Below the pieces are notes generated by a model. It saw nothing but the letters and a program-made list of their open reading frames with translations. It did not search any database and was not told where the DNA came from. Positions 8,297 through 20,781 of a stretch of 64,000 nt of DNA are shown piece after piece (position 1 is the stretch's first letter; every line of letters starts with the position of its first letter). The stretch covers positions 1,240,001 through 1,304,000 of the forward strand of contig VJWM01000063.1 in NCBI GenBank assembly GCA_010909165.1, in the 5' to 3' direction. Origin of the DNA: Anthoceros angustus (taxonomy: Eukaryota; Plantae; Anthocerotophyta). The translations under genes and the position numbers were made by a program.

Positions 8297-8565
8297 TCTA
8301 CATCTTCTGTAGATTAATGTTTTTCTAGAAGTAAATGAACTTGTATGTGTCTCACAAAATCATGACAGGTAATATCACCATTTGGAAGAGTCATGTTATG
8401 TGTACCATCTAGGACATCGGAAACAATTTGATTTCTATCCTGAGATACTTGAGGAGTATTCTTTGTCTCTATGACATAGAAGAGGACATCTATTTTGTCC
8501 AGCACAAAGTATTGCACCCAACAAAGCCTTCAATTAACATAAAATGAAGTCAATGTATGCCATCC
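8297..8565. repeat. Decayed dispersed repeat, copy 1 (homologous to 15993-16620)
   Basis: TACATCTTCTGTAGATTAATGTTTTTCTAGAAGTAAATGAACTTGTATGTGTCTCACAAAATCATGACAGGTAATAT aligns with 15993 onward; CACCCAACAAAGCCTTCA is shared with ~16540. Confidence 0.7.
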
Positions 8566-8578
8566 AACAATGAAGAAA

Positions 8579-9600
8579 TGGAGACTTTATAAAATGGACG
8601 AGATGAGAAAACCCATCTACCCCAAGCCGATGGGGAACACCCCATTAAAGGGCCAAGGGCCAAGGGAGGCTAGCCCCCCCTGAATGTCGATCCCGAAACT
8701 ATCAACCGCCCCAAGTATGTCAAGGTTAGAGATAAGAAAAGGCCTACCTACAATCGGTGCCGCTAATGCCGCGTCTCCCGCGCTCGATGTCGTCCTGCAA
8801 ACAGCGTTGGCCAACGCCCTCTACAGGGTGATGGAAACCTACTGTCGAAAGAAAGCCACCACATAGGAAAGGGGGAGACCCGCCCCGTTCCGTCGACCGT
8901 GGTAGGCCATAGCACAATCCTTTATGAGCCGTCCGAAATCCTTGCCCATGGCCTCGTGGGTCTCGATGGAGAGGGGGATGAAGGTATGGCCATCCTGCAT
9001 AGGCATGTACTTGTGTACTTTGGATGTTACACATCCCTTCGCCGCCGAACCCGAAGGATTGATGATGACGTGCTCACAAACGGTGTTCCGGGTAGGGTCC
9101 GTTACAACTACATCTGCAACAAAGATTTGATCCCCCTTGGTTAGAAACAGATCCGCCCTAAGCGACAAGCCATTGCGCAGGGTATATGGGCGCTCCCTAT
9201 ACGGAAGAAATCCTCTCTCCTTGGCCATCGAGAACATGACATCGTGAACGGCATCATGTGCAGCGATACGCTGCCCTCCAGCTAGACAGCGAGCCAAGTG
9301 GGACCCAGAGTCGTCAAGAGGGCCCAACAGAAGCAAAAAGATAGAGAACCAGCCAAAGACGGGATCAAGCCCAGGCGGAACCTCATCGCAGTAGAAAAAG
9401 AGGTTGGTGCGATTCGGAAAGCCTAGATGCACAGCAGAGCCAAAAACCAAGAGCTCGCTCCCTTCCCCGAGCAAGAGCGGACGCAAGCCCGAGCTGGCCA
9501 GGTAGTGGTAAAATCCAGAAGAAGGGCCCTTTGCGCCTTCTCCTATAGAGGGGCCTGAAGGCAATGCAGCCCGTCCACAAAGAGCGTAGAAAAAAGGGGC
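8579..9600 (-). mobile_element. Decayed 3' part of a non-LTR retrotransposon with restriction-like endonuclease (CRE-like clade)
   Basis: Two-frame translation: RSCSGKGASSW...TSFSTAMRFRLGL...CFC[1-bp frameshift]LDDSGSHLARC (zinc knuckle) ...AAHDAVHDV...RE...LRADLFL...VADVVVTDP...KVHKY...FIPLSIET...FFRQ*VSITL*RALANAV. No RT core is present. Confidence 0.75.
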
Positions 9601-9666
9601 ATGGCCGCCCTAGCCTGCGAGGATAAGGAATCCCTAGCCAACCCTAGGGAAACTTGCAAGGGGAAG

Positions 9667-10148
9667 GCCCTTACGGGCTGCCCGTCGTGAGCCTTACGGT
9701 GCCGTCGTGAGCCTTGCAGGCTGCCCGTCGTGGAGCCTTCTGGTGCCCGTCGTAAGAGCCTTCACGGGCTGCCGTCGTGAAGAGCCTGCCCGTCGTGGAG
9801 CCTTCTGGTGCCCGTCGTAAGAGCCTTCTGGTGCCCGTCGTCAAGAGCCTTCACGGGCTGCCCGTCGTGAAGAGCCTTACGGGCTGCCTGTCAGAAGAGC
9901 CTTACGGTGCCCGTCGTGGAAGAGCCTTACGGGCTGCCCGTCGTAGCCTTACGGGCTGCCTCGTCAGAGCCTTACGGGCCGCCTCGTCAGAAGAGCCTTA
10001 CGGGCTGCCCGTCGTAAAAGAGCCTTACGGGGCTGCCCCGTCGTATGAGCCTTACGGGGCTGCCCCGTCGTATGAGCCTTACGGGGCTGCCCCGTCGTAT
10101 GAGCCTTACGGTGCCCGTCGTGAAGAGCCTTACGGTGCCCGTCAGAAG
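9667..10148. repeat. ~25-bp GC-rich tandem array (~20 degenerate copies) with an internal palindrome
   Basis: Consensus AGCCTTACGGGCTGCCCGTCGTGAAG; core ACGGGC-T-GCCCGT is a perfect inverted repeat. Confidence 0.92.
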
Positions 10149-10150
10149 AG

Positions 10151-10333
10151 GCATAAAGCAAGAATTGAATATGCATAAGTAAAATACAAAAGTGTTATGT
10201 AGAGTATATAAGCCTATCCACTAGGCTAAGCACCCCTTCACTTAGACAACCCTTGATATTAATAACCCTAAACATAACTACCCTAGGGTTTAACCCGAAG
10301 CGAGTTAGTTTAACCACGAACACCCTCCCTTAA
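10151..10333 (-). mobile_element. Inverted 3' LTR (truncated, 172 bp) preceded by polypurine tract
   Basis: Minus strand reads TTAAGGGAGGG|TGTTCGTGGTTAAAC..., matching the 10548 LTR with 6 mismatches in 172 bp. The last ~30 bp of the LTR are missing. Confidence 0.88.
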
Positions 10334-10547
10334 GCGCAACGAGCTGAGGGAGTCAGGGCGCGACTGAAGCACGGGAGTCTTCACGTGAAGGAGGCCACGG
10401 CAGGACGGTCACGAGGCAGGAGCTAACAAGCGGGGCTTAAACAGGCACACTCATCAATGAGCAAGGACGTGAGCTGGGGAAGGATGGATTCAGCCATAAA
10501 TCTGACATCCGCGTATGCAGCACTCCTCACCATCATCTTTCAGGCAG

Positions 10548-10749
10548 TATTCGAGGTTAAACTAACTTGCTTCGGGTTAAACCCTGGGGTAGTTATATTT
10601 AGGGTTATTAATATCAAGGGTTGTCTAAATGAAGGGGTGCTTAGCCTAGTGGATAGGCTTATATACTCTACATAACACTTTTGTATTTTACTTATGCATA
10701 TTCAATTCTTGCTTTATGCTCTCTTTTTCCTGCTCTACCATTTTCAACA
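10548..10749 (+). mobile_element. 5' LTR, 202 bp
   Basis: TATTCGAGG...TTTTCAACA (TG start changed to TA relative to the other copy), TATA-like TATATA inside, directly followed by the PBS. Confidence 0.88.
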
Positions 10750-10762
10750 TGGTATCAGAGCC
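10750..10762 (+). promoter_or_regulatory. Primer-binding site (initiator Met tRNA)
   Basis: TGGTATCAGAGCC immediately after the LTR end CA; canonical plant copia PBS. Confidence 0.93.
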
Positions 10763-11275
10763 ATGACAAAAAGGCTATGGCTCCTGATCCTCATGGCCAG
10801 GCTATTCGATACCGATACCTCGGTCGATCCTGGAGTTTATCAGACCTGATCCATCGATTATGGGTTGAGGCTGTTGATACATTAGTATGATAAGCTTATT
10901 TGTATGTTTGCACAACCAAAAGGATCTTATGATCGTGTATATAGTGTTTCGTCTATGTGCTTGAATAGACGAACGTGCAGAGTCTCGATCTACAACTACC
11001 ATCCTACATACTTCCGCTGCCTAGCAGGAAGAAGAAATGAAATTCTAATTTATATGGTCTGATTTTCTGGTCAAAAACAGGAAAAGCAGCAGGGACTTCA
11101 ACAGGACTCAGTAGCATTTTTCTATGCTGGCTGAATTTTGTTAAAATCTCTACTCTTCTCCCTGCACGACAGAATTAGCGTATCTACATATAATTATGAC
11201 ACAATTTCCAAAATCATGATTCAGACCTCTAATTCTAATAGATGAGGTATTATCTTGCGCTTGATCTACACCATA

Positions 11276-11590
11276 ATGCCTTCCCGTAGGCGCGGTCGTC
11301 GCAGACCTACACAGAACAGGGAAACAAATCAGCCCAGTGCAGTTGAAGCACAGCAGGAAATTTATTTTGCTGACCAGAATACTCACAATTTGGGCAATGG
11401 TGTGGTGACTGACCGTGATTTTCTGGCCTGGCGCATTGACAATCTACATGCCCAACTTGTCCATGTAATCCTTATGCAGGGTGCTGATTATATGACGCAG
11501 ACCCGAAGGATTATTACCAGAATTGACAAAATCTCTGCTGAAATTTCACAGATTGGTGGGCGCCTGGATCTCCTCATTCAGGAATTATAG
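11276..11590 (+). CDS. Extra 104-aa ORF in the copia 5' leader, unknown function
   Basis: ATG 11276 to TAG 11590: MPSRRRGRRRPTQNRE... basic N-terminus and heptad-like C-terminus (IITRIDKISAEISQIGGRLDLLIQEL). Confidence 0.45.
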   Translation: MPSRRRGRRRPTQNRETNQPSAVEAQQEIYFADQNTHNLGNGVVTDRDFLAWRIDNLHAQLVHVILMQGADYMTQTRRIITRIDKISAEISQIGGRLDLLIQEL

Positions 11591-11988
11591 TGCCCCAACC
11601 ACCCTGAACCCATCTCCATGGTGCAGCCAGCAGTGGGATTGTTCCTGCCTACCCTGTTGCCCACTCCTGAAAAATCGGATGCAAATCGTTAGGGTTTCGC
11701 ATGAACAGACAGTTCATGTGAAAGGGCATTTTAACATTAGGGTTTTATGAAACACATCTGTTCACACTGTCGTTTCGCAGCAAGCATGTCGTTTCATGGC
11801 TCCCCTTTGTGCCCCAATTTCCCTTAGCATTGTAGATACACCTTTGCACAGGTAGATCACTCAGTTAGTCAACAATGTATGGATGATTGGCTACTAGAGG
11901 ACTTGGCTGAATCCCTTTCTCACCTCTTTTTTTTGGAAGACTGGTTGATGCTGGCCAAGCCATCTTGAACACAGGCCAACCTGCAAAT

Positions 11989-13197
11989 ATGTCTAACGTC
12001 AATCCTCCTCCTCCTCCTCCTCCGCCACCACTTTCCCCTCCTCTGCCCCCTCCTCCACCTCCTGGCTCATATAACCCTGTTTTCACATCTGAATTGAAAG
12101 AGAAGGACAGGTTTAATGGTCAAAACTACGAGGTGTGGAGAGTGCGGATGAGGTCGACACTACTGGCTAGAGGAGTCTGGGGCATTGTAGATGGCTCTAT
12201 TCGTGAGCCAGCTCCCACTGCCCTTACGGGAGAGAAGGACAAATGGGCTCATGCTAACAGCATTGGCATTGCCCTCCTTGACTCTGGCCTGACTGAGGAT
12301 CTTATTCCTCAGATTGAATTCCTTACTAAGGCCCAGTGAGATCTGGTCACAATTGGAAAGCCAATACAAGATCAACAATGTCCTCACACTCTGTACATTG
12401 CGCATGGAGTTTTATGGACTAAAAATGCGAGAAGGAGACAAAGTTCTTGCTCACACCAGCAAACTTAGACACCTTCGAGCCCAACTTACCTCCCTCGGTA
12501 CTATGATGGACAAGGTGGACGTGATTGCTCAGTTGCTCATCAGCCTGCCACCCAGTTACCAGAACTTCGTATCTGCCCACAATGTTCCCATCCGACATGC
12601 TATGGCTGCCGGTGCTTCTGGGAGACAAGTTACTATCACCTTAGACGAGGTGATAGGGGCCCTCTTCCAGGAAGAGCAAAGCAGGCTCATGTTAGGGTCT
12701 GGAAAATCCAAAGCTGACAGAGTGCTCACAGCTTTCCGTGGACGAGGGTCACAGAAAGACAAGACGCGGATACAGAATTCACACCAGGGAATTAATCGCC
12801 ATGAAGGCCAACGCAATGATGCAGGTCCTTCTGCTAAACGTACTGGAACTTGTAACTGGTGCGGCAAACCTAGTCATTGGGCTAATGAATGTAGGAAAAA
12901 GAAAGCTGGGGAGCCACGAAAGCCTTCTCATCCTACTGTCAGCGCTGTTGTTCGTGACAAGCCTGCAAAATCAAACAAGCCAGCAGTCAAGATCCTAACA
13001 GTCTATTTGTCTACCTTAACAAGTGATGGAGCAACCTGGTACCTGGATTCTGGGGCTACAACCCACATATGCAGGGATGAGTCCCTCTTCACATCCATAA
13101 CTCCCTCTTCTAGTATAGACAGAGTGTACTTAGGGGATGAGCGTAACACCACTAGCCTGCAGATACTAGGACAGGGTTCCTGCACATTCATGTTTAC
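11989..13197 (+). pseudogene. gag-pol: Copia gag + aspartic protease (frameshifted, truncated)
   Basis: FNGQNYEVWRVRMRSTL, LLISLPPSY, CCHC knuckle CNWCGKPSHWANEC, protease WYLDSGATTHIC. One extra C near 12332 (AAGGCCCAGTGAG) shifts the frame. Confidence 0.9.
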
Positions 13198-15994
13198 CTT
13201 TAGCAAGACAAGTGAAGTCAAGACGATAGAGATCATGCTCAGGTAGGGCCTTGAAGATGCACACAGAGGGTGAGTCCTTTCTTAAGAAGCAACAGGAGCC
13301 TTCTTGAGCTGTTAGCTGGAAGCTTCCAAGTTTAAGAAGTCTACTTAGTGACAGCAGGTTTTTGGCCATGCTGGGCACATATAGAACCTCTGTCAGGGTT
13401 AAAGTAGATCCATCACTTAGCGGAAGATCCTTTTTACGTCTGTCCAATGGGCACGACCTGGGGTATCTAGGAATTGGGATACAGTACTAACAGAGTGCTG
13501 TATATCAGGTCTAGTCCAGTTACTGATGAAGATCAGGCTGCCGACAGCCTGACGATATGGCACATCAAGCATTTCCTGCTTATCATCATCTGTGGCAGGA
13601 GACTCATATCTGGTGAGTTTTGTGCCTGCAGCGCCTGGTGTAGAAGCAGGATGAGCCTGTCCCATGTGAAACCTGTGAAGAATTTCCGCTATGTATTTGT
13701 GTTGGTGAATGATCAGCAGACCTTCTGACCTAACCCTGAGAACCTGGATTCCCAAGCAGAATAGCAGGTCACCGCTGTCTGTCATTTCAAACGTGTTTCT
13801 TAACAAAGTCTTGACATGTGACAGGATAGCAGGGTTGCTAGCCGCAAGTATGACATCGTCGACATAAAGAGCAAGGATAACATAAGCAGATCTGTCTCGA
13901 AACATGTAGACGTTCAAGTCAGCTGTGCATTGTGTGAAACCCAGAGACTTCAGGGCAGTATCGCATCTTTTATACCAGCGTTCTGCACTTTGCTTTAATC
14001 CATACAGGCATTTAATTAATAGACAAACGTGGTCAGGATGTGCAGGGTCAACATAGCCTTCCGGCTACTCCATGTACAATTCCTCCTCAAGGATGTCATG
14101 GAGGAAAGCCGTGCAAACATCCATCTGTTGTAGCTCAAGGTAATATTCCGCTACAAGAGCCAGAATCATACGAATAGATTGGGCACGCACTACAGGAGAA
14201 AAAATCTCTTGGTAATCCAAGCCTGCAACTTGGGTAAACCCCCTGGCGCACAGCCTTGCTTTATATCGAGCTATATGTCCTTGTGCATTGAGCTTGTGTT
14301 TGAACACCCACTTACAGGTGATTGCTTTTCTTTTGGCAGGTCTAGGAACAAGACGCCAAGTACCATTTTTGATCAAGCTGTTATACTCGTCGTCAACAGC
14401 GAATTTCCATTTGTCCTTGTCTGGTCCAGTGAGTGCCTCTGTGAGAGAAGTTAGCTCTGGAGGCACATCTGGAGGTGAAGAAACTGCTGAAGCAGCATGA
14501 CGTCTGAAGTCTATGCTGGCATATGGAGGTTCCTTCCATTCGGAAGGTGGAGGTCTGTGCCTTGAGGAGCGGCGTGGGCCTACATCCTCGGCGTCTTCCT
14601 GAGGGCTGAGGTGGCTCATCGTCCTCATCAGGTATGTCATCCATCACCTGTGGACCCGGATTGTCCACAAATTCCAAGTCGTCATCTGGATTTTCAGCAT
14701 CCTGTTCAACATGATCGAAATCTAACCCATTCAGGTCTACTGCAGGTGCCAAAGGATCTGGCTGGTTATCATCGTCACCAGCAGTAGGACGTGGAATGGA
14801 TTTTCAGCATCCTGTTCAACATGATCGAAATCTAACCCATTCAGGTCTACTGCAGGTGCCAAAGGATCTGGCTGGTAATCAGCGTCACCAGCAGCAGGAC
14901 GTGGAATAATTGGAGCTGGTGCTGGATTGCCTGCAGGTAAGTTATGGACGATGCCATCAACATCCAAGGGATACAGAGATAAAAGACCAGGTGTGTCCTC
15001 GAGAACTGCGTCTTCAGAGTCAGCTTGCTGCTCAAAGGGATCATGTGGTTCATCTCTCAATGGGGCAGACTGAAGGGGTTCCAAAAACGTAACGCTTCTC
15101 GCAAGAACAGGTTGCCTGGAAATTGGATCAATCAGCTTGTATGCCTTGACTATTTCACTATAGCCCACAAAAATAAGGCGCTTTAAGCGATTGTCTAACT
15201 TCCGTCGTTTTTCTGCAGGTAGATAAGCATAGGCCTTAGAGCCAAAGATCCTAAGATGAAGGAGGCTCGGCTTGCGTTTCCAGAACAACTCGAACGGTGT
15301 TGTGTTAGAGACAAGAGAGCTAGTGGGCAGCCTGTTTACTATGTAGGATGAGGTGACCATTGCTTCTGCCCAGTAGGGTGATGGGAGACCTGACCACAGC
15401 AGCATGGCTCGGGTCATGCCCATTAAGGTCTGGTTTTTCCTTTCAGCAACTCCATTCTGTTGCTGCGTATAAGGCACGATTAGCTGGTGGATAATTCCTT
15501 GTGTGGTGAAGAGGTTTTCGAAGGACTGATTCACAAACTCTGTGCCATTATCAGATCTGAAGATCTTGAGGAAACAGCCTGTCTGGCGCTGCACGGTGAT
15601 CAACCAGTCTTGGAACAGAGGGAAAGTGTCATTTTTCCTCTTCATAGGAAACGTCCATGTGTATCTCGTATAGTCGTCTGTAATAGTGAAGTAATAATCT
15701 GCCCCACCAAGTGAAGAAACCTGAAGGCGGCCAGAGATATCAGCGTGCACTAATTCCAGAGGTTGAGAGGATCTGTGAGCTGGGCCTGTTGGGAAGGGCT
15801 GTTCCTTCTGTTTAGCAAGGGCACATGTCTCACAGAGGGGAAGTGCCTTTAGATGAGCAGGAAGAGGCTCACGATAGCAGTCACTGTTACTTAGGGATGC
15901 TAGGGCTTTGCGATTCAGATGTCCAAGCCTTGCATGCCAGAGAATGGACTGCTGTTGAGCCGATAGGTTTCCTGCACTTGTAGAATTAGCTTTA
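13198..15994 (-). pseudogene. pol: Copia pol block (GAG-pre, integrase, RT; then post-protease linker), inverted and permuted
   Basis: Minus strand from 15994: ANSTSAGNLSAQQQSILWHARLGH..CETC; integrase TDDYTR/RSDNGTEF/NGVAERKN; RT CKWVFKHK..YKARLCARGFTQ..QMDVCTAFL..LYVDDV..WTDVKRIFR; then LSDGSTLTLTEVLYVPSMAKNLLS..DLYRLDFTCLAK. Contains a TAG at 14065, a frameshift near 14600 and a 110-bp duplication. Confidence 0.92.
14687..14907. repeat. 110-bp tandem duplication within the integrase-RT linker
   Basis: TGGATTTTCAGCATCCTG... at 14687 and 14797; 3 substitutions between copies; length is not a multiple of 3. Confidence 0.9.
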
Positions 15995-16620
15995 CATCTT
16001 CTATAGATTAATATCTTTCCAGGAAGAAAATGAGCTTGTATATGTCATACAAAATCATGACAGCTAATATTGTCGCGATTTCGAAGATGCATGTATAGCA
16101 ATTCCCTAACATAGCAGAAGTGAAGAATTTAAGGGGAGGATATTATCTGCACAACCTTTCTGTGGCGAAGATGTACGCTGCCAAATACAGGAAAGGTGCC
16201 AAGGTCTTCGAGAGCACTTGGCACGAGGATTCCAGCACGCTTCTTTTTGGTAGAGAGGGATTACCAAAACTTACTTTGTAGGAAAGAAAAGGAGAATAGA
16301 AGGAGATCATGGTACGATACTGGCCATTTTCTAAGTAAGCTTGTTCACCAACTACTTGGAACATTTGGCAGAGAATTTGAACCACATTTGTCTTACGAAC
16401 CTAACAAATTATGCATCACTCTAAACTTTCTAGAGGCTAAAGTGACTAGTCTAAACATACATACAACGTAGATTTTGAAACCACGCCTCCAATCTCCACG
16501 ATATGAACGAAGACCTCCATTTTGTCCAATGCAATGTATTCCACCCAACAAAGCCTTCATCAATAGAAAATGCAGTCGATGTATTCCACCCAACAAATCC
16601 TTCATTCAATAGAAAATGAA
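15993..16620. repeat. Decayed dispersed repeat, copy 2 (with internal 45-bp duplication at 16534/16579)
   Basis: Homologous to 8297-8565 in the same orientation; ATGTATTCCACCCAACAAA occurs twice at 45-bp spacing. Confidence 0.7.
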
Positions 16621-17336
16621 CTCATTCTTGTTCATAACAAGAGCCGTCTAGCAAAATAGTCCGTCTAGCAAAATACTGCTCAAATTGGTGATAGAATAGC
16701 ATCACACCACACTTAAGCATAAAAGAAGATTTATATCCATTTTTGTTTAATGCAATGTGTTCTATCCAATAAAACTATTGATCAGTAGGAAATGAAGTGG
16801 ATCGTGCTCATAACATTAGCCTTTTAGGATGATAGATAGCATCCCAGCACACTTAAGTGCTGAAACCAAACTATGTTTGTGCACTTCACCACCTCACATA
16901 CCTTTTCTTATCCTTTTAATTTGAACAAATGAGAGATTCGGTTTTATGGGTGAATTTAAAATTTGAATTTGGTTTTTGAATGTTTGAATATCAATTTTAT
17001 GACGAGGGTGACAATGTACACTAGGTGGGGGATTTTTTGAATTGGATCAGAACTTAACTTAGGACGTTTTCAAGACAAAAATTGCTAGTGCTAGTTTCTG
17101 TTTAGCCAGTATGTGGCGAAGGTCCTGACGATTGTAACGATGCGTTGAGTGGATCGCAGGGCTGCAGGGTGGTTGAGCCATCGGAATGTGCGTCGTGTGG
17201 ATTCAGACTCTGCCAGATTAGGTCTGGAGCTGATCGTGCACGGGAGCTCAACGGACGCAGAGCGCATGTTTCTTGTCCAAACTCCGCCGGTGCATCTTTT
17301 CATGGTAGCCCCGAGCCGTGTGTGCTGCTTCAAGCG

Positions 17337-20023
17337 ATGGGAGTTCCCCGTCAGATTGATGGCCTGAAATCGCTATGCTTGATACCTGGAGCGAGTGATT
17401 TCACGCTGCACGGGAGCGGGCCATGGAAGCGGCTGTCGCGTTACCCGGGCCTGGCCACTGCACTCACCGTGGTCGGTGCTGGAGCTGCAATTCTGGCCTT
17501 GAGATACACAGGCAATTCGGTTCGTGTTGCGTGTGTATATACTCCCTTGAGTTGGAGGTGGTGTAACCCCTTGGTGAAGGAGCTAGGAGTGCCTGGACTC
17601 AAGAACCCTGGCAACAGCTGCTTTCTCAACGTCATCCTGCAGGCATGAAGCATGGCTGGAGTCTGGTGCTGCAATTGATGTTTTATGCTTTCGGTTGGGA
17701 GCTCAAGGGCTGGTGTCTTATTTTCGCAGGCATTGGCAAGCTCTGAGGAGTTCATATCCTTTCTGGCACTCGATTGCCGGTTAGCCAGGCGGAATAACTA
17801 TAGCTTGCGTTTGGCAGCACCTTTGCTAGAACTTCTAACTGGTAGGTGAGAGAGAGTGGGTGAATTTGTGGATGCATTGTGGCAGCAGGCAAAGCAAACT
17901 GGTCTGTCCATTTGTGTGTGTTGCTATGCCAGAGCTCTCCGAAACGACATTTGAACGTAAGGTGGCAGATTCTGGTGTTGTGATGCACATCCTCGAACGC
18001 TCTTCAAGGGGCTTCGATCTTAGCCGGCAGCAGGTATGTGCTCGTGTTATGGCTTGCAAGGTGCGTTCGTATCTCAGGTGCTTTAGTTGAAAGGGAACGG
18101 GGTGAATGATGTGGAGTGTTGTGCAGGACGCTGCAGAGTTCCTTAATCGTCTGGCAGAACTGTTGAAAACAGAGCGTAATGCCTTCTTTCAGAAATTGCA
18201 ACCAGATGTGGACTCGTTTGCAGATGTTCCGCTCATAGCTAGTGATGCGAATCCAAGTGCGCGATGCAGTAGAGTCGCGTCTGAGGACAGTAAGAGGCAG
18301 AGGTTGCTGTGTCCACTGGAGGGAAGAACTCAAAGTTTGATGTTCTGCCAGAAGTGTCATCACAAGGTTGCAAGATGTACAAGCCCTCAGTGTGCTTTTC
18401 TTAGATTTCTGTGCAGCTGCTCAGGGAAAATGTACAAAATATGCAACAGCTTGTCCTTTTCTGACATTGCTCATGCAGTTCCCGAGCAACTTGGAAGGTT
18501 TCACCAGCATCCCCCTTGCACTTCCAAGCAAGCGTGGAATCGTTGTGAGTAGTCTGATGCTTCTCTCCATAAGAAGACCCATTCTTTGTTATCACCCCGG
18601 AGCCACTTACATCATCAATGGTTGCAGACGGAAGGATGTGATCTCAGTCGTTGTCTCAACCAGTACACATCAGTTGAGGTGGTTTCTGACTTCACATGCA
18701 TCCGGTGTACACATCGAGCTTCAGCACAACTCCAGCAGGAGCATGAGTTCCTCAAACATCTTGTAGGTAGTCAGTTGCTTCTTTCACGATGATTTTGCTG
18801 TTCAATTGAAGAGTGCGCTGTTCTTTGACTGAGCTCATCGACCGGCTGACAGATAACAGCATGTAATTTGGATGACGAGTGCCACTGTAAGGATGTGACA
18901 GTTCAAATGGGAGGAACATGGAGGAAGGTGAATACACAGGTTCATAGACGCCTCATGATATCATGTGCTCCAAAGGTGATCTTCATGATGCATAATCCTG
19001 TCCTCAAACATACTTAATCTGCTCATCCTTCTGGGGGTCATCTTGGTCCTAGGAGGGTTTGTCACGAGTTATTTTCTGCAGATCTGTGACTGCTATTGCT
19101 AGTTTCATTTTCCTTTGCTGTGACTGACAGGGCGTACCTGAAAGTGGGGCTAACAAATAACTGATTTGTATGTCATTTGAAGGTGACTGATGCTGTGCAT
19201 CCTTGAGCTGTGCAGGTTTTGTGCCTTCAAATTCCTCGAGCAAGGTGTAGTAATTCTGATGGTCATGCACGACCGCAAAAATTGAAGGTTGGTGATAACG
19301 TTTCAGCTGGTTTGGGTCATGACACTGCAGTTTTTTCTGTGTGAAGTCTTTGCTCTTGGAACTCAGGCTGTTGTCATGGGTTCGGGACGCTCTTGTGCCA
19401 AGATCAACATGACGCTGACGCCAAGGTCTAAATGTAGGGTCATGTCAAATTCCCAACATCACTGGACCTGTCCCAATGCATGATTACAGGCGTGCATACA
19501 GATACACAAGGTGATGATACTATTCCTCAGATTTTGCTTCTGCTCATGGAACTGCGTTTGTCAGTTACTTCTTTGATGCCCCTGGGACCCAATAGTCGCT
19601 GCTGCTTGATGTTTTTTGACAATCTCACCGCCCATACCCCTAGCAGACACGCCAGCTCGCTTGAGTATGCAAGGTGATGGGAATGCTGGTGACCTGGTGC
19701 CTGTTGGTCAACAAAGTGCTACAGGAGGTACGTCGTCTGAGAGGATAAGCCCAAGAACCATGTACGAGCTGCTATCCGTGGTCGAGCATCAGGGTTATGT
19801 ACCCGATAGTGGCCACTTTGCGGTCTATCGAAGGGTGAGGATTTCTAAGCCGAAGGGTGACATCGACAGGCGTCGGAGCCAGCCCCGGGACAGTGCTGAA
19901 GTACCTGCATCTGGCCGCACTGTCTGGTTTAAGGTGTCAGACTCTGAGGTGTCCAGAGTTTCTGAAGAGGTTGTCCTGAAGGCTGAGGCTTCGCTTCTAT
20001 TCTACCAGCAAATAGCTGATTAA
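17337..20023 (+). CDS. UBP27: Ubiquitin carboxyl-terminal hydrolase 27-like (USP30-type), multi-exon
   Basis: N-terminal hydrophobic anchor (LATALTVVGAGAAILAL), Cys box VPGLKNPGNSCFLNVILQALAS, QQDAAEFL, His box VVEHQGYVPDSGHFAVYR, WFKVSDSEV...EASLLFY*. The start ATG is inferred and some internal exon borders are approximate. Confidence 0.88.
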
Positions 20024-20781
20024 AGGGCAATACGCAATCAACTCTTTAGGTGCTCCTTGTCACGTCGCTGTCACCTTCCTCTTCTGGATGTTGTGATTTG
20101 TCAGGTGGGACTATCAGCACCCTGCTCAGTCGCTGTATGGGGCTGATCGGAGATCAGTGAATGAGACGGAATTCCCCAACAGAAGTAGGAAGCTGACCAT
20201 TGTGAGTATTCGTCCTTGTCTGTTCTGAATTTTTCGAATCATGCTGTGCTTCAGAAAGCCCCTAACTTGGTGACTAAAATTTCTTGCGGCAGCACCAGTT
20301 GGAGGTAACGCTGGCCTGGACCGTTGGAGCTCGCACCGTGAAACCAGATGCAGTCACTCTAATCTAGCGGTGAACCTCATGGCCTAAAGCCACCCTCGGA
20401 CTACATTCTTTGAGACTCCAAAGTCTCCTTTTTTTTCTGAATCCTTGGAAAGGAAGAACACTTGTGCAGCCTGTAGCATGTTCGTTCTATGGAGCTCCAA
20501 CCTTGCAACCTGATGGATTTATCGGCTAGACAAGCCGGTGGAAGGGAAAGTACAGAACGATTTCTACCGAATCCATTTTGGCGCGCATACAAAAAAGCGG
20601 CTCGTCATTTTATCAAGCTCCAACCTGCGCAACCCCAATACACGCACCAGATATGTATGTATGTACATAGCTCGCCACTGACGTCAGTGCAGATGACCGT
20701 GCGAGGCAGCGAGACCCAGCCGATGCGATGCCGAATTAACCCGCCAGTGGACGCCCGGTATCGGCACAGGTCGGGAGAGCG

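Follow-up and report, generated by a model that had tools for sequence, protein, structure and literature searches.

A 64-kb stretch of the Anthoceros angustus genome (positions 1,240,001–1,304,000 of contig VJWM01000063.1), referred to here as the window, contains a single Ty1/copia element in pieces, which spans positions 10146–15994 and forms a composite of 5.85 kb. Its coding part is divided among three segments: A, which carries gag and the first half of the protease barrel; B, which carries the second half of the barrel and the linker behind it; and C, which carries the integrase and the reverse transcriptase (RT). The native order is A-B-C, as judged from Pfam models and the closest relatives, and the window contains A, rc(B), and rc(C), where rc denotes the reverse complement. 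Segments B (223 bp) and C (2574 bp), a block of 2797 bp in all, are thus each flipped in place. When the non-coding ends are included, the signed order of the locus is −5 (3′ end), +1 (5′ long terminal repeat (LTR) to A), −2 (B), and −3 (C), with piece 4, the RNase H part, lost. The reading that we favor, and to which we give about an even chance, is that one Ty1/copia element, now dead, went through a multi-break rearrangement in which error-prone end joining put the pieces back together.

This reading is carried by shared breakpoints. No residue is lost between the end of A and the start of B, B and C share 3–5 nt where the one ends and the other starts, and each part is present once, which argues that one molecule was cut and rejoined and that neither independent copies nor simple copying gave rise to the locus. 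By an arithmetic estimate, the chance of two such coincidences within a few nucleotides, if breaks in a roughly 5-kb element were independent, is of order 1e-6. The order −5 +1 −2 −3 has five breakpoints and would take a minimum of three inversions in succession as well as a deletion; one multi-break event is therefore more parsimonious, and successive simple inversions were rejected. The single-event origin and the repair pathway are proposed from this parsimony and from the scars at the junctions.

In the proposed mechanism, three or more breaks, in mid-protease (A/B), in the protease-integrase linker (B/C), and at the RT/RNase H border (end of C), would have been rejoined by end joining of the polymerase theta type, using microhomology and filler. 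B and C would each have been returned upside-down to its own place, the RNase H part would have been lost, and the 3′ end, comprising the polypurine tract and the 3′ LTR, would have been set inverted before the 5′ LTR, probably in the same event. The broken molecule may have been an unintegrated complementary DNA (cDNA), in linear form or as an autointegration circle, that later entered the genome at a chromosome break and left no target-site duplication; this last step is possible but somewhat doubtful.

Native Order and Lesions of the Coding Segments

The element is assigned to Ty1/copia on the basis of its domains, with the integrase upstream of RT on one strand (Pfam gag, Pol_BBD, rve, SH3_retrovirus, and RVT_2; Table 1). 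The 81-position Pol_BBD model is split between two segments, with positions 1–52 in A and positions 49–80 in B. In tblastn alignments, residues 9–153 of the related protein P0118 fall at 12734–13189 on the plus strand and its residues 155–175 at 13420–13358 on the minus strand, so that one protein spans A and B. Another, P0001, spans B and C, with residues 1–36 at 13315–13208 and residues 46–354 at 15990–15061, both on the minus strand. Together with the divided Pol_BBD model, these two alignments give the native order A-B-C. The source of each of P0001, P0118, and P0121 is a Logan contig listed as 5601 nt, and the three proteins probably belong to one related element, in which gag, protease, and integrase follow one another as usual.

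P0118 came from a representative search, which was used after a word search with the gag-protease open reading frame (ORF) had found no match at E ≤ 1e-10. For the integrase ORF, the best word-search match had only 62% identity, and the collection holds no close family member of that length. In two metagenome scans, the native B/C join deduced here, with wobble positions left open, had 0 matches, and the integrase relatives had 0 confirmed loci.

Searches with four full-length polyproteins (tblastn) found no part of the element twice, each domain being located once, and no RNase H throughout the window. The RT match stops at KRIFR, which corresponds to residue 1235 of 1410 in P0247. These results bear out much of a preliminary description of the locus: its assignment of A to the plus strand and of B and C to the minus strand, with their coordinates, is reproduced by reading frames, Pfam, and tblastn; its native order A-B-C is confirmed by the Pol_BBD split and by the P0118 and P0001 alignments; and its derivation of B and C from the same element copy as A is supported. 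The rearrangement of B and C that it described stands as part of a larger scramble, whose missing RNase H and inverted 3′ LTR had been overlooked.

The gag frame starts at the ATG at 11989 and carries one frameshift near 12336. On the plus strand, the gag-protease frame is open over 12293–13243, where it passes through ...GQGSCTFM and reads on into FTFSK...; its end reads ...LQILGQGSCTFM, followed by unrelated residues. On the minus strand, 15996–13420 constitutes one frame, running from CKANSTSAGN... to ...KRIFR, with one stop at 14065–14067 and a frame break at a 110-bp tandem duplication. This duplication is a separate slippage-type lesion in the same element. Because of the gag frameshift and the RT stop, and because RNase H and an intact 3′ end are missing, the copy is predicted to be without function.

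Table 1. Features of the rearranged element and its right flank, in window coordinates
Feature	Positions	Strand	Basis or remark
Inverted LTR copy, 3′ LTR type	10146–10322	−	Matches 10548–10725, with 6 substitutions and 1 indel over about 178 nt
Polypurine tract TTAAGGGAGGG (minus-strand reading)	10323–10333	−	Directly upstream of the inverted LTR
Spacer, 214 nt	10334–10547	−	Contiguous with the polypurine tract; far end joined to the 5′ LTR tip
5′ LTR, 202 bp	10548–10749	+	Starts TA(TG)TTCG, ends TTCAACA; 3′ boundary taken from the primer-binding site, 5′ boundary from where the match to the inverted copy stops
Primer-binding site TGGTATCAGAGC	10750–10761	+	Single occurrence in the window
Segment A: gag and first half of protease barrel	11989–13192	+	Pfam DUF4219, Retrotran_gag_2/3, and Pol_BBD; P0118
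J1 filler TTTAC, 5 nt, between end of A and end of B	13193–13197		Collinearity with P0118 leaves no room for it
Segment B: second half of protease barrel and linker, LSDGSTL...DFTCLAK	13198–13420	−	Pol_BBD, E = 3.5e-7; P0118 and P0001
J2, end of C joined to start of B; likely 4-nt microhomology GCTA	13418–13421	−	R-Y-L motif in relatives
Segment C: pre-integrase, integrase core, SH3-like domain, RT to KRIFR	13421–15994	−	Pfam rve, SH3_retrovirus, and RVT_2; tblastn P0247, P0186, and P0001
110-bp tandem duplication, acidic integrase-RT linker	14687–14906	−	Copies 97% identical
J3, right-hand CTTTA, identical to 13198–13202	15990–15994		Last two bases, TA, also begin the flanking repeat
Right flank, non-copia repeat	15993–16596	+	Homologous to 8299–8570, 79–86% identity

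Junctions between the Segments

At J1, where the end of A now meets the end of B, the comparison with P0118 defines the limits of both segments. P0118 (...GRGTCIFRLQDG..., ...GRGTCIFRLQDGTDLRLDDVLYVPSMAKNL...) and the restored A/B join (...GQGSCTFM-LSDG..., or ...GQGSCTFM-LSDGSTLTLTEVLYVPSMAKNL...) are collinear residue for residue. Segment A therefore ends at the ATG at 13190–13192, nothing has been lost at A/B, and the pentamer TTTAC is filler. The same pentamer is also present at J3 (15991–15995) and near J2, and a 5-mer is too short to be called templated.

J2 connects the end of C with the start of B across TAGC, which reads GCTA on the minus strand, confirming the overlap noted in the preliminary description. 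Segment C ends ...CGC TA, and relatives carry on with Y-L (KRIFRYL in P0247); segment B starts CTA, and its native preceding base is the G of the ATG that ends A. From this ATG and the conserved R-Y motif of the relatives, a microhomology of 4 nt, GCTA, is likely.

At J3, the right end of C adjoins a repeat unrelated to copia. The preliminary description had drawn attention to CTTTA at both ends of the block, and the pentamer is indeed present at 13198–13202 and at J3. The homology of the flank to 8299–8396 begins exactly at TACATCTTCT, that is, at 15993, so the TA of the right-hand CTTTA may be flank, in which case J3 is a 2-nt microhomology. Of the 5-bp duplication of TAAAG that had been proposed, a short duplication at B/C stands, reduced to 3–5 nt with TA shared with the flanking repeat; the secure part is AAG. 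The seamless reconstruction of B/C as LAKAN, with TAAAG in single copy, is in frame, and zero duplication with TA taken as flank (LAKEAN, LAKEANS) is equally so. Protein-level comparison with relatives thus supports the A/B join through P0118 and accommodates LAKAN and LAKEAN alike at B/C. Among relatives, the linker that separates the protease from LWHARLGH is 22 to 29 residues long, and with such variation, the loss of a few codons at B/C is conceivable. A random pair of positions in the window shares a 5-mer with p = 0.001 and a 3-mer with p = 0.017.

The preliminary description had further taken the 5-nt repeat for a target-site duplication made by a copia integrase. The repeat is the element's own sequence, two of its five nucleotides are shared with the flank, and neither TGTT nor AACA tips are present at 13198 or 15994; an integrase target-site duplication at the block ends was rejected on the absence of LTR tips. 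In Arabidopsis, polymerase theta end joining leaves microhomologies of about 2–3 nt and short fillers (PMC10923293). The scars observed here, a 5-nt filler at J1, a 4-nt microhomology at J2, and a 2-nt microhomology at J3, would fit end joining of this type.

Long Terminal Repeats and the 3′ End

The features expected of an LTR element are visible upstream of A: TG...CA ends, a primer-binding site, and a polypurine tract, with the qualification that the 5′ copy begins with TA and not TG. We take the primer-binding site to match the initiator methionine tRNA. The second LTR copy is inverted; in LTR orientation, it begins TGTTCG and lacks the final 24 nt of the LTR, and a tandem array adjoins its left side. 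It is identified as the 3′ LTR because the polypurine tract directly precedes it, and purine runs of at least 9 nt account for about 0.2% of window positions. The two LTR copies differ by about 3.4%.

Between the polypurine tract and the 5′ LTR lies the spacer, whose far end is joined to the LTR tip at 10547/10548. From its contiguity with the polypurine tract, the spacer is presumed to be the non-coding internal DNA at the element's extreme 3′ end; it matches nothing else in the window. No 5-bp target-site duplication is found outside the two LTRs: the composite ends, 10145/10146 and 15994/15995, share no repeat, and the original ends are not preserved.

The leader between the primer-binding site and the gag ATG is unusually long (1.2 kb, 10762–11988) and contains an ORF of 111 amino acids (11255–11590) with no Pfam match. 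The two LTR copies (10146–10749) constitute a 178-bp inverted repeat with a 225-nt spacer, which, if transcribed, would fold as a long hairpin and could yield small RNA.

Origin of the Rearrangement

A different origin had been put forward in the preliminary description, in which B and C were excised together as a roughly 2.8-kb circle closed at GCTA, reopened at B/C by a staggered cut, and reinserted inverted at the site of origin. We regard this as improbable. It accounts for J2, which joins both outer ends of the B+C block as circle closure would, and for the 3–5 nt duplication at the proposed reopening point; in addition, duplications in cattle and humans are known to have passed through circular intermediates that left microhomology scars (PMC7450558), and LTR retrotransposons form extrachromosomal circular DNA (eccDNA) (PMC7197481). 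However, circularization, reopening at B/C, and inverted reinsertion produce rc(B) rc(C), the same string as flipping B and C each in place. The two routes share their three breaks and three joins and differ only in the order of these in time, so the layout, which had been viewed as a hallmark of translocation through a circular intermediate, is not diagnostic of a circle, and no sequence feature demands one. A closure junction that joins the outer block ends, as expected of a circular intermediate, is observed at J2; an order flip that local inversions could not generate, likewise expected, is not observed. Reinsertion at the very base of departure, the end of A, would be an extra coincidence, the lack of LTR tips at the block ends indicates that integrase was not involved, and a circle explains neither why RNase H was lost nor why an inverted 3′ LTR precedes the 5′ LTR. 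As a methodological point, the description "inverted plus circularly permuted," when applied to two adjacent segments, is no evidence of a circle.

Serial template switching (microhomology-mediated break-induced replication or fork stalling and template switching, MMBIR/FoSTeS) would have a fork broken at the end of A copy B backwards, then C backwards, and jump to the right flank, skipping RNase H and the 3′ end. Every junction has microhomology or filler, the copied stretches would overlap by 3–5 nt, the 110-bp tandem duplication shows that replication slippage has occurred in the same element, and template-switch mechanisms have been discussed for comparable flips (PMC7450558). Copying would nonetheless not be expected to begin and break off at identical bases, with A/B exact to the residue, unless the templates ended there, no duplication exceeds 5 nt, and template switching does not place an inverted 3′ LTR upstream; it fits the exact reuse of breakpoints less well than cutting and rejoining does, and we hold it to be decidedly unlikely. 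A nested insertion of two or three copies of the same family with later deletions, for example a plus-strand element in a minus-strand one, would bring a 5′ LTR tip up against DNA that continues into a polypurine tract and an inverted 3′ LTR, which is the arrangement seen at 10548, and the divergence of about 3.4% between the LTR copies is compatible with it. Against this, no segment occurs twice, and the A/B and B/C ends coincide within 0–5 nt, which is unexpected for independent copies. An intact minus-strand copy would yield rc(C) before rc(B), not after, and simple deletion from a nested pair was rejected on this ground; homologous recombination between inverted copies was likewise rejected, by the reasoning that each element would stay collinear. 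Juxtaposed copies are, on balance, very improbable. The chance that chimeric or palindromic reads, or another fault of the reads or the assembly, created the structure is also judged to be very small: the locus is repeat-rich and its structure comes from the assembly, but three junctions lie within 2.8 kb and one piece measures 223 bp, such that single long reads would be expected to cover all of them, assemblers would not be expected to invent such joins at non-repeated sequence, and the junctions bear biological scars. Autointegration was rejected as the source of J1–J3, since no LTR tips are present at these junctions.

Several points weigh against the multi-break reading. The junctions are known from the assembly alone, and the native A/B, B/C, and 3′ internal sequences are derived from proteins that are 50–62% identical. 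The structure itself equally fits cutting and rejoining, a circle stage, and serial template switching. A second, independent insertion 225 bp away could have left the inverted 3′ LTR as its remnant; the LTR-tip junction would then be one of ordinary integration and silent on any extrachromosomal stage. Finally, the reading has to assume three to five breaks within a 5-kb stretch.

Comparison with Known Systems

The circular intermediates described for cattle color sidedness and for human cSDP segmental duplications share with this locus a junction that joins the outer ends of the donor block, new ends that are internal, and only microhomologies and small indels as scars (PMC7450558). In those cases, the permuted copy is found at a distant acceptor site with its orientation retained, and the order flip is impossible by local inversions (PMC7450558). 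The hornwort locus, in contrast, has no donor-acceptor pair, and its block is in its own place and inverted, which amounts to two in-place flips.

Autointegration inversion circles, for which the SISYPHUS paper (PMC7197481) cites Garfinkel 2006, provide a parallel to the non-coding ends of the element. In these "suicide" circles of Ty1 and Arabidopsis SISYPHUS, the two LTRs face opposite ways, and an inverted stretch of internal sequence lies between them (PMC7197481). Similarly, the hornwort LTRs are opposed with a presumed inverted internal portion between them, and an LTR tip is joined to what appears to be the element's own internal DNA at 10547/10548, the identity of the spacer resting on its contiguity with the polypurine tract. 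The SISYPHUS and Ty1 circles are extrachromosomal dead ends in particle DNA, whereas the hornwort copy is chromosomal. Furthermore, in the hornwort copy, the second LTR-tip junction with a 5-bp duplication is not preserved, the 3′ LTR lacks 24 nt and adjoins a tandem array, and J1–J3 are without LTR tips.

The scars at J1–J3 are also reminiscent of transferred DNA (T-DNA) in Arabidopsis (PMC10923293) and of Ty1 cDNA in yeast, where capture of retrotransposon cDNA at chromosome breaks is documented (PMC11372161): microhomologies of 2–4 nt, short filler, few end bases lost, and no outer target-site duplication. The differences are that the pathway at the hornwort locus is deduced from scars only, fillers shorter than 6 nt being unmappable to a template, and that the captured Ty1 pieces in yeast are mostly short (PMC11372161). 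Chromothripsis-like rearrangements and chromoanasynthesis show the same clustered breakpoints, random orientation of pieces, and loss of one piece; the scale here is that of a single 5-kb element.

A 5′ LTR-tip junction of the kind observed is expected from an autointegration inversion circle, from the joining of a free cDNA end, or from insertion beside the remnant of a second element 225 bp away. An extrachromosomal stage, on grounds other than those of the preliminary description, has clearly less than an even chance without being remote. The specific proposal that 10146–15994 is the fossil of an unintegrated copia cDNA, which formed an autointegration circle (5′ LTR tip to a site 225 nt upstream of the 3′ LTR) and was then broken, rejoined, and captured without a target-site duplication, is fairly unlikely. 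If it is true, the locus would preserve, fixed in the germline, the return of a retrotransposon "suicide" or eccDNA product to a plant genome. If the spacer is the element's own 3′ end, the locus would be a rare chromosomal trace of autointegration or extrachromosomal cDNA, otherwise known only from particle or eccDNA sequencing. By itself, it is of little importance: plant genomes commonly contain such non-functional remnants of rearranged transposons.

Surroundings of the Element

The DNA of the window is plant-like. The tandem array at 9660–10145, which adjoins the truncated inverted 3′ LTR, has a unit of roughly 27 nt (GAGCCTTACGGGGCTGCCCCGTCGTAT and variants) and comprises about 18 units; at the join, ...GTCAGAAGAG is followed directly by GCATAAAGC, with an imperfect AAGAG overlap to the LTR. 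The repeat that forms the right flank is unclassified and present in two copies (8299–8570 and 15993–16596), of which the second, beginning at the right end of the copia block, contains about 400 bp extra. Left of 8299, nothing matches anything near the copia element. Between the first repeat copy and the tandem array, an ORF of 241 amino acids on the minus strand (8839–9564) has no Pfam match and may belong to another mobile element. To the right of the element, 17145–20100 on the plus strand contains ORF fragments, including ...GLKNPGNSCFLNVILQA, which resembles the Cys box of a ubiquitin-specific protease, and this region is probably an intron-containing host gene.

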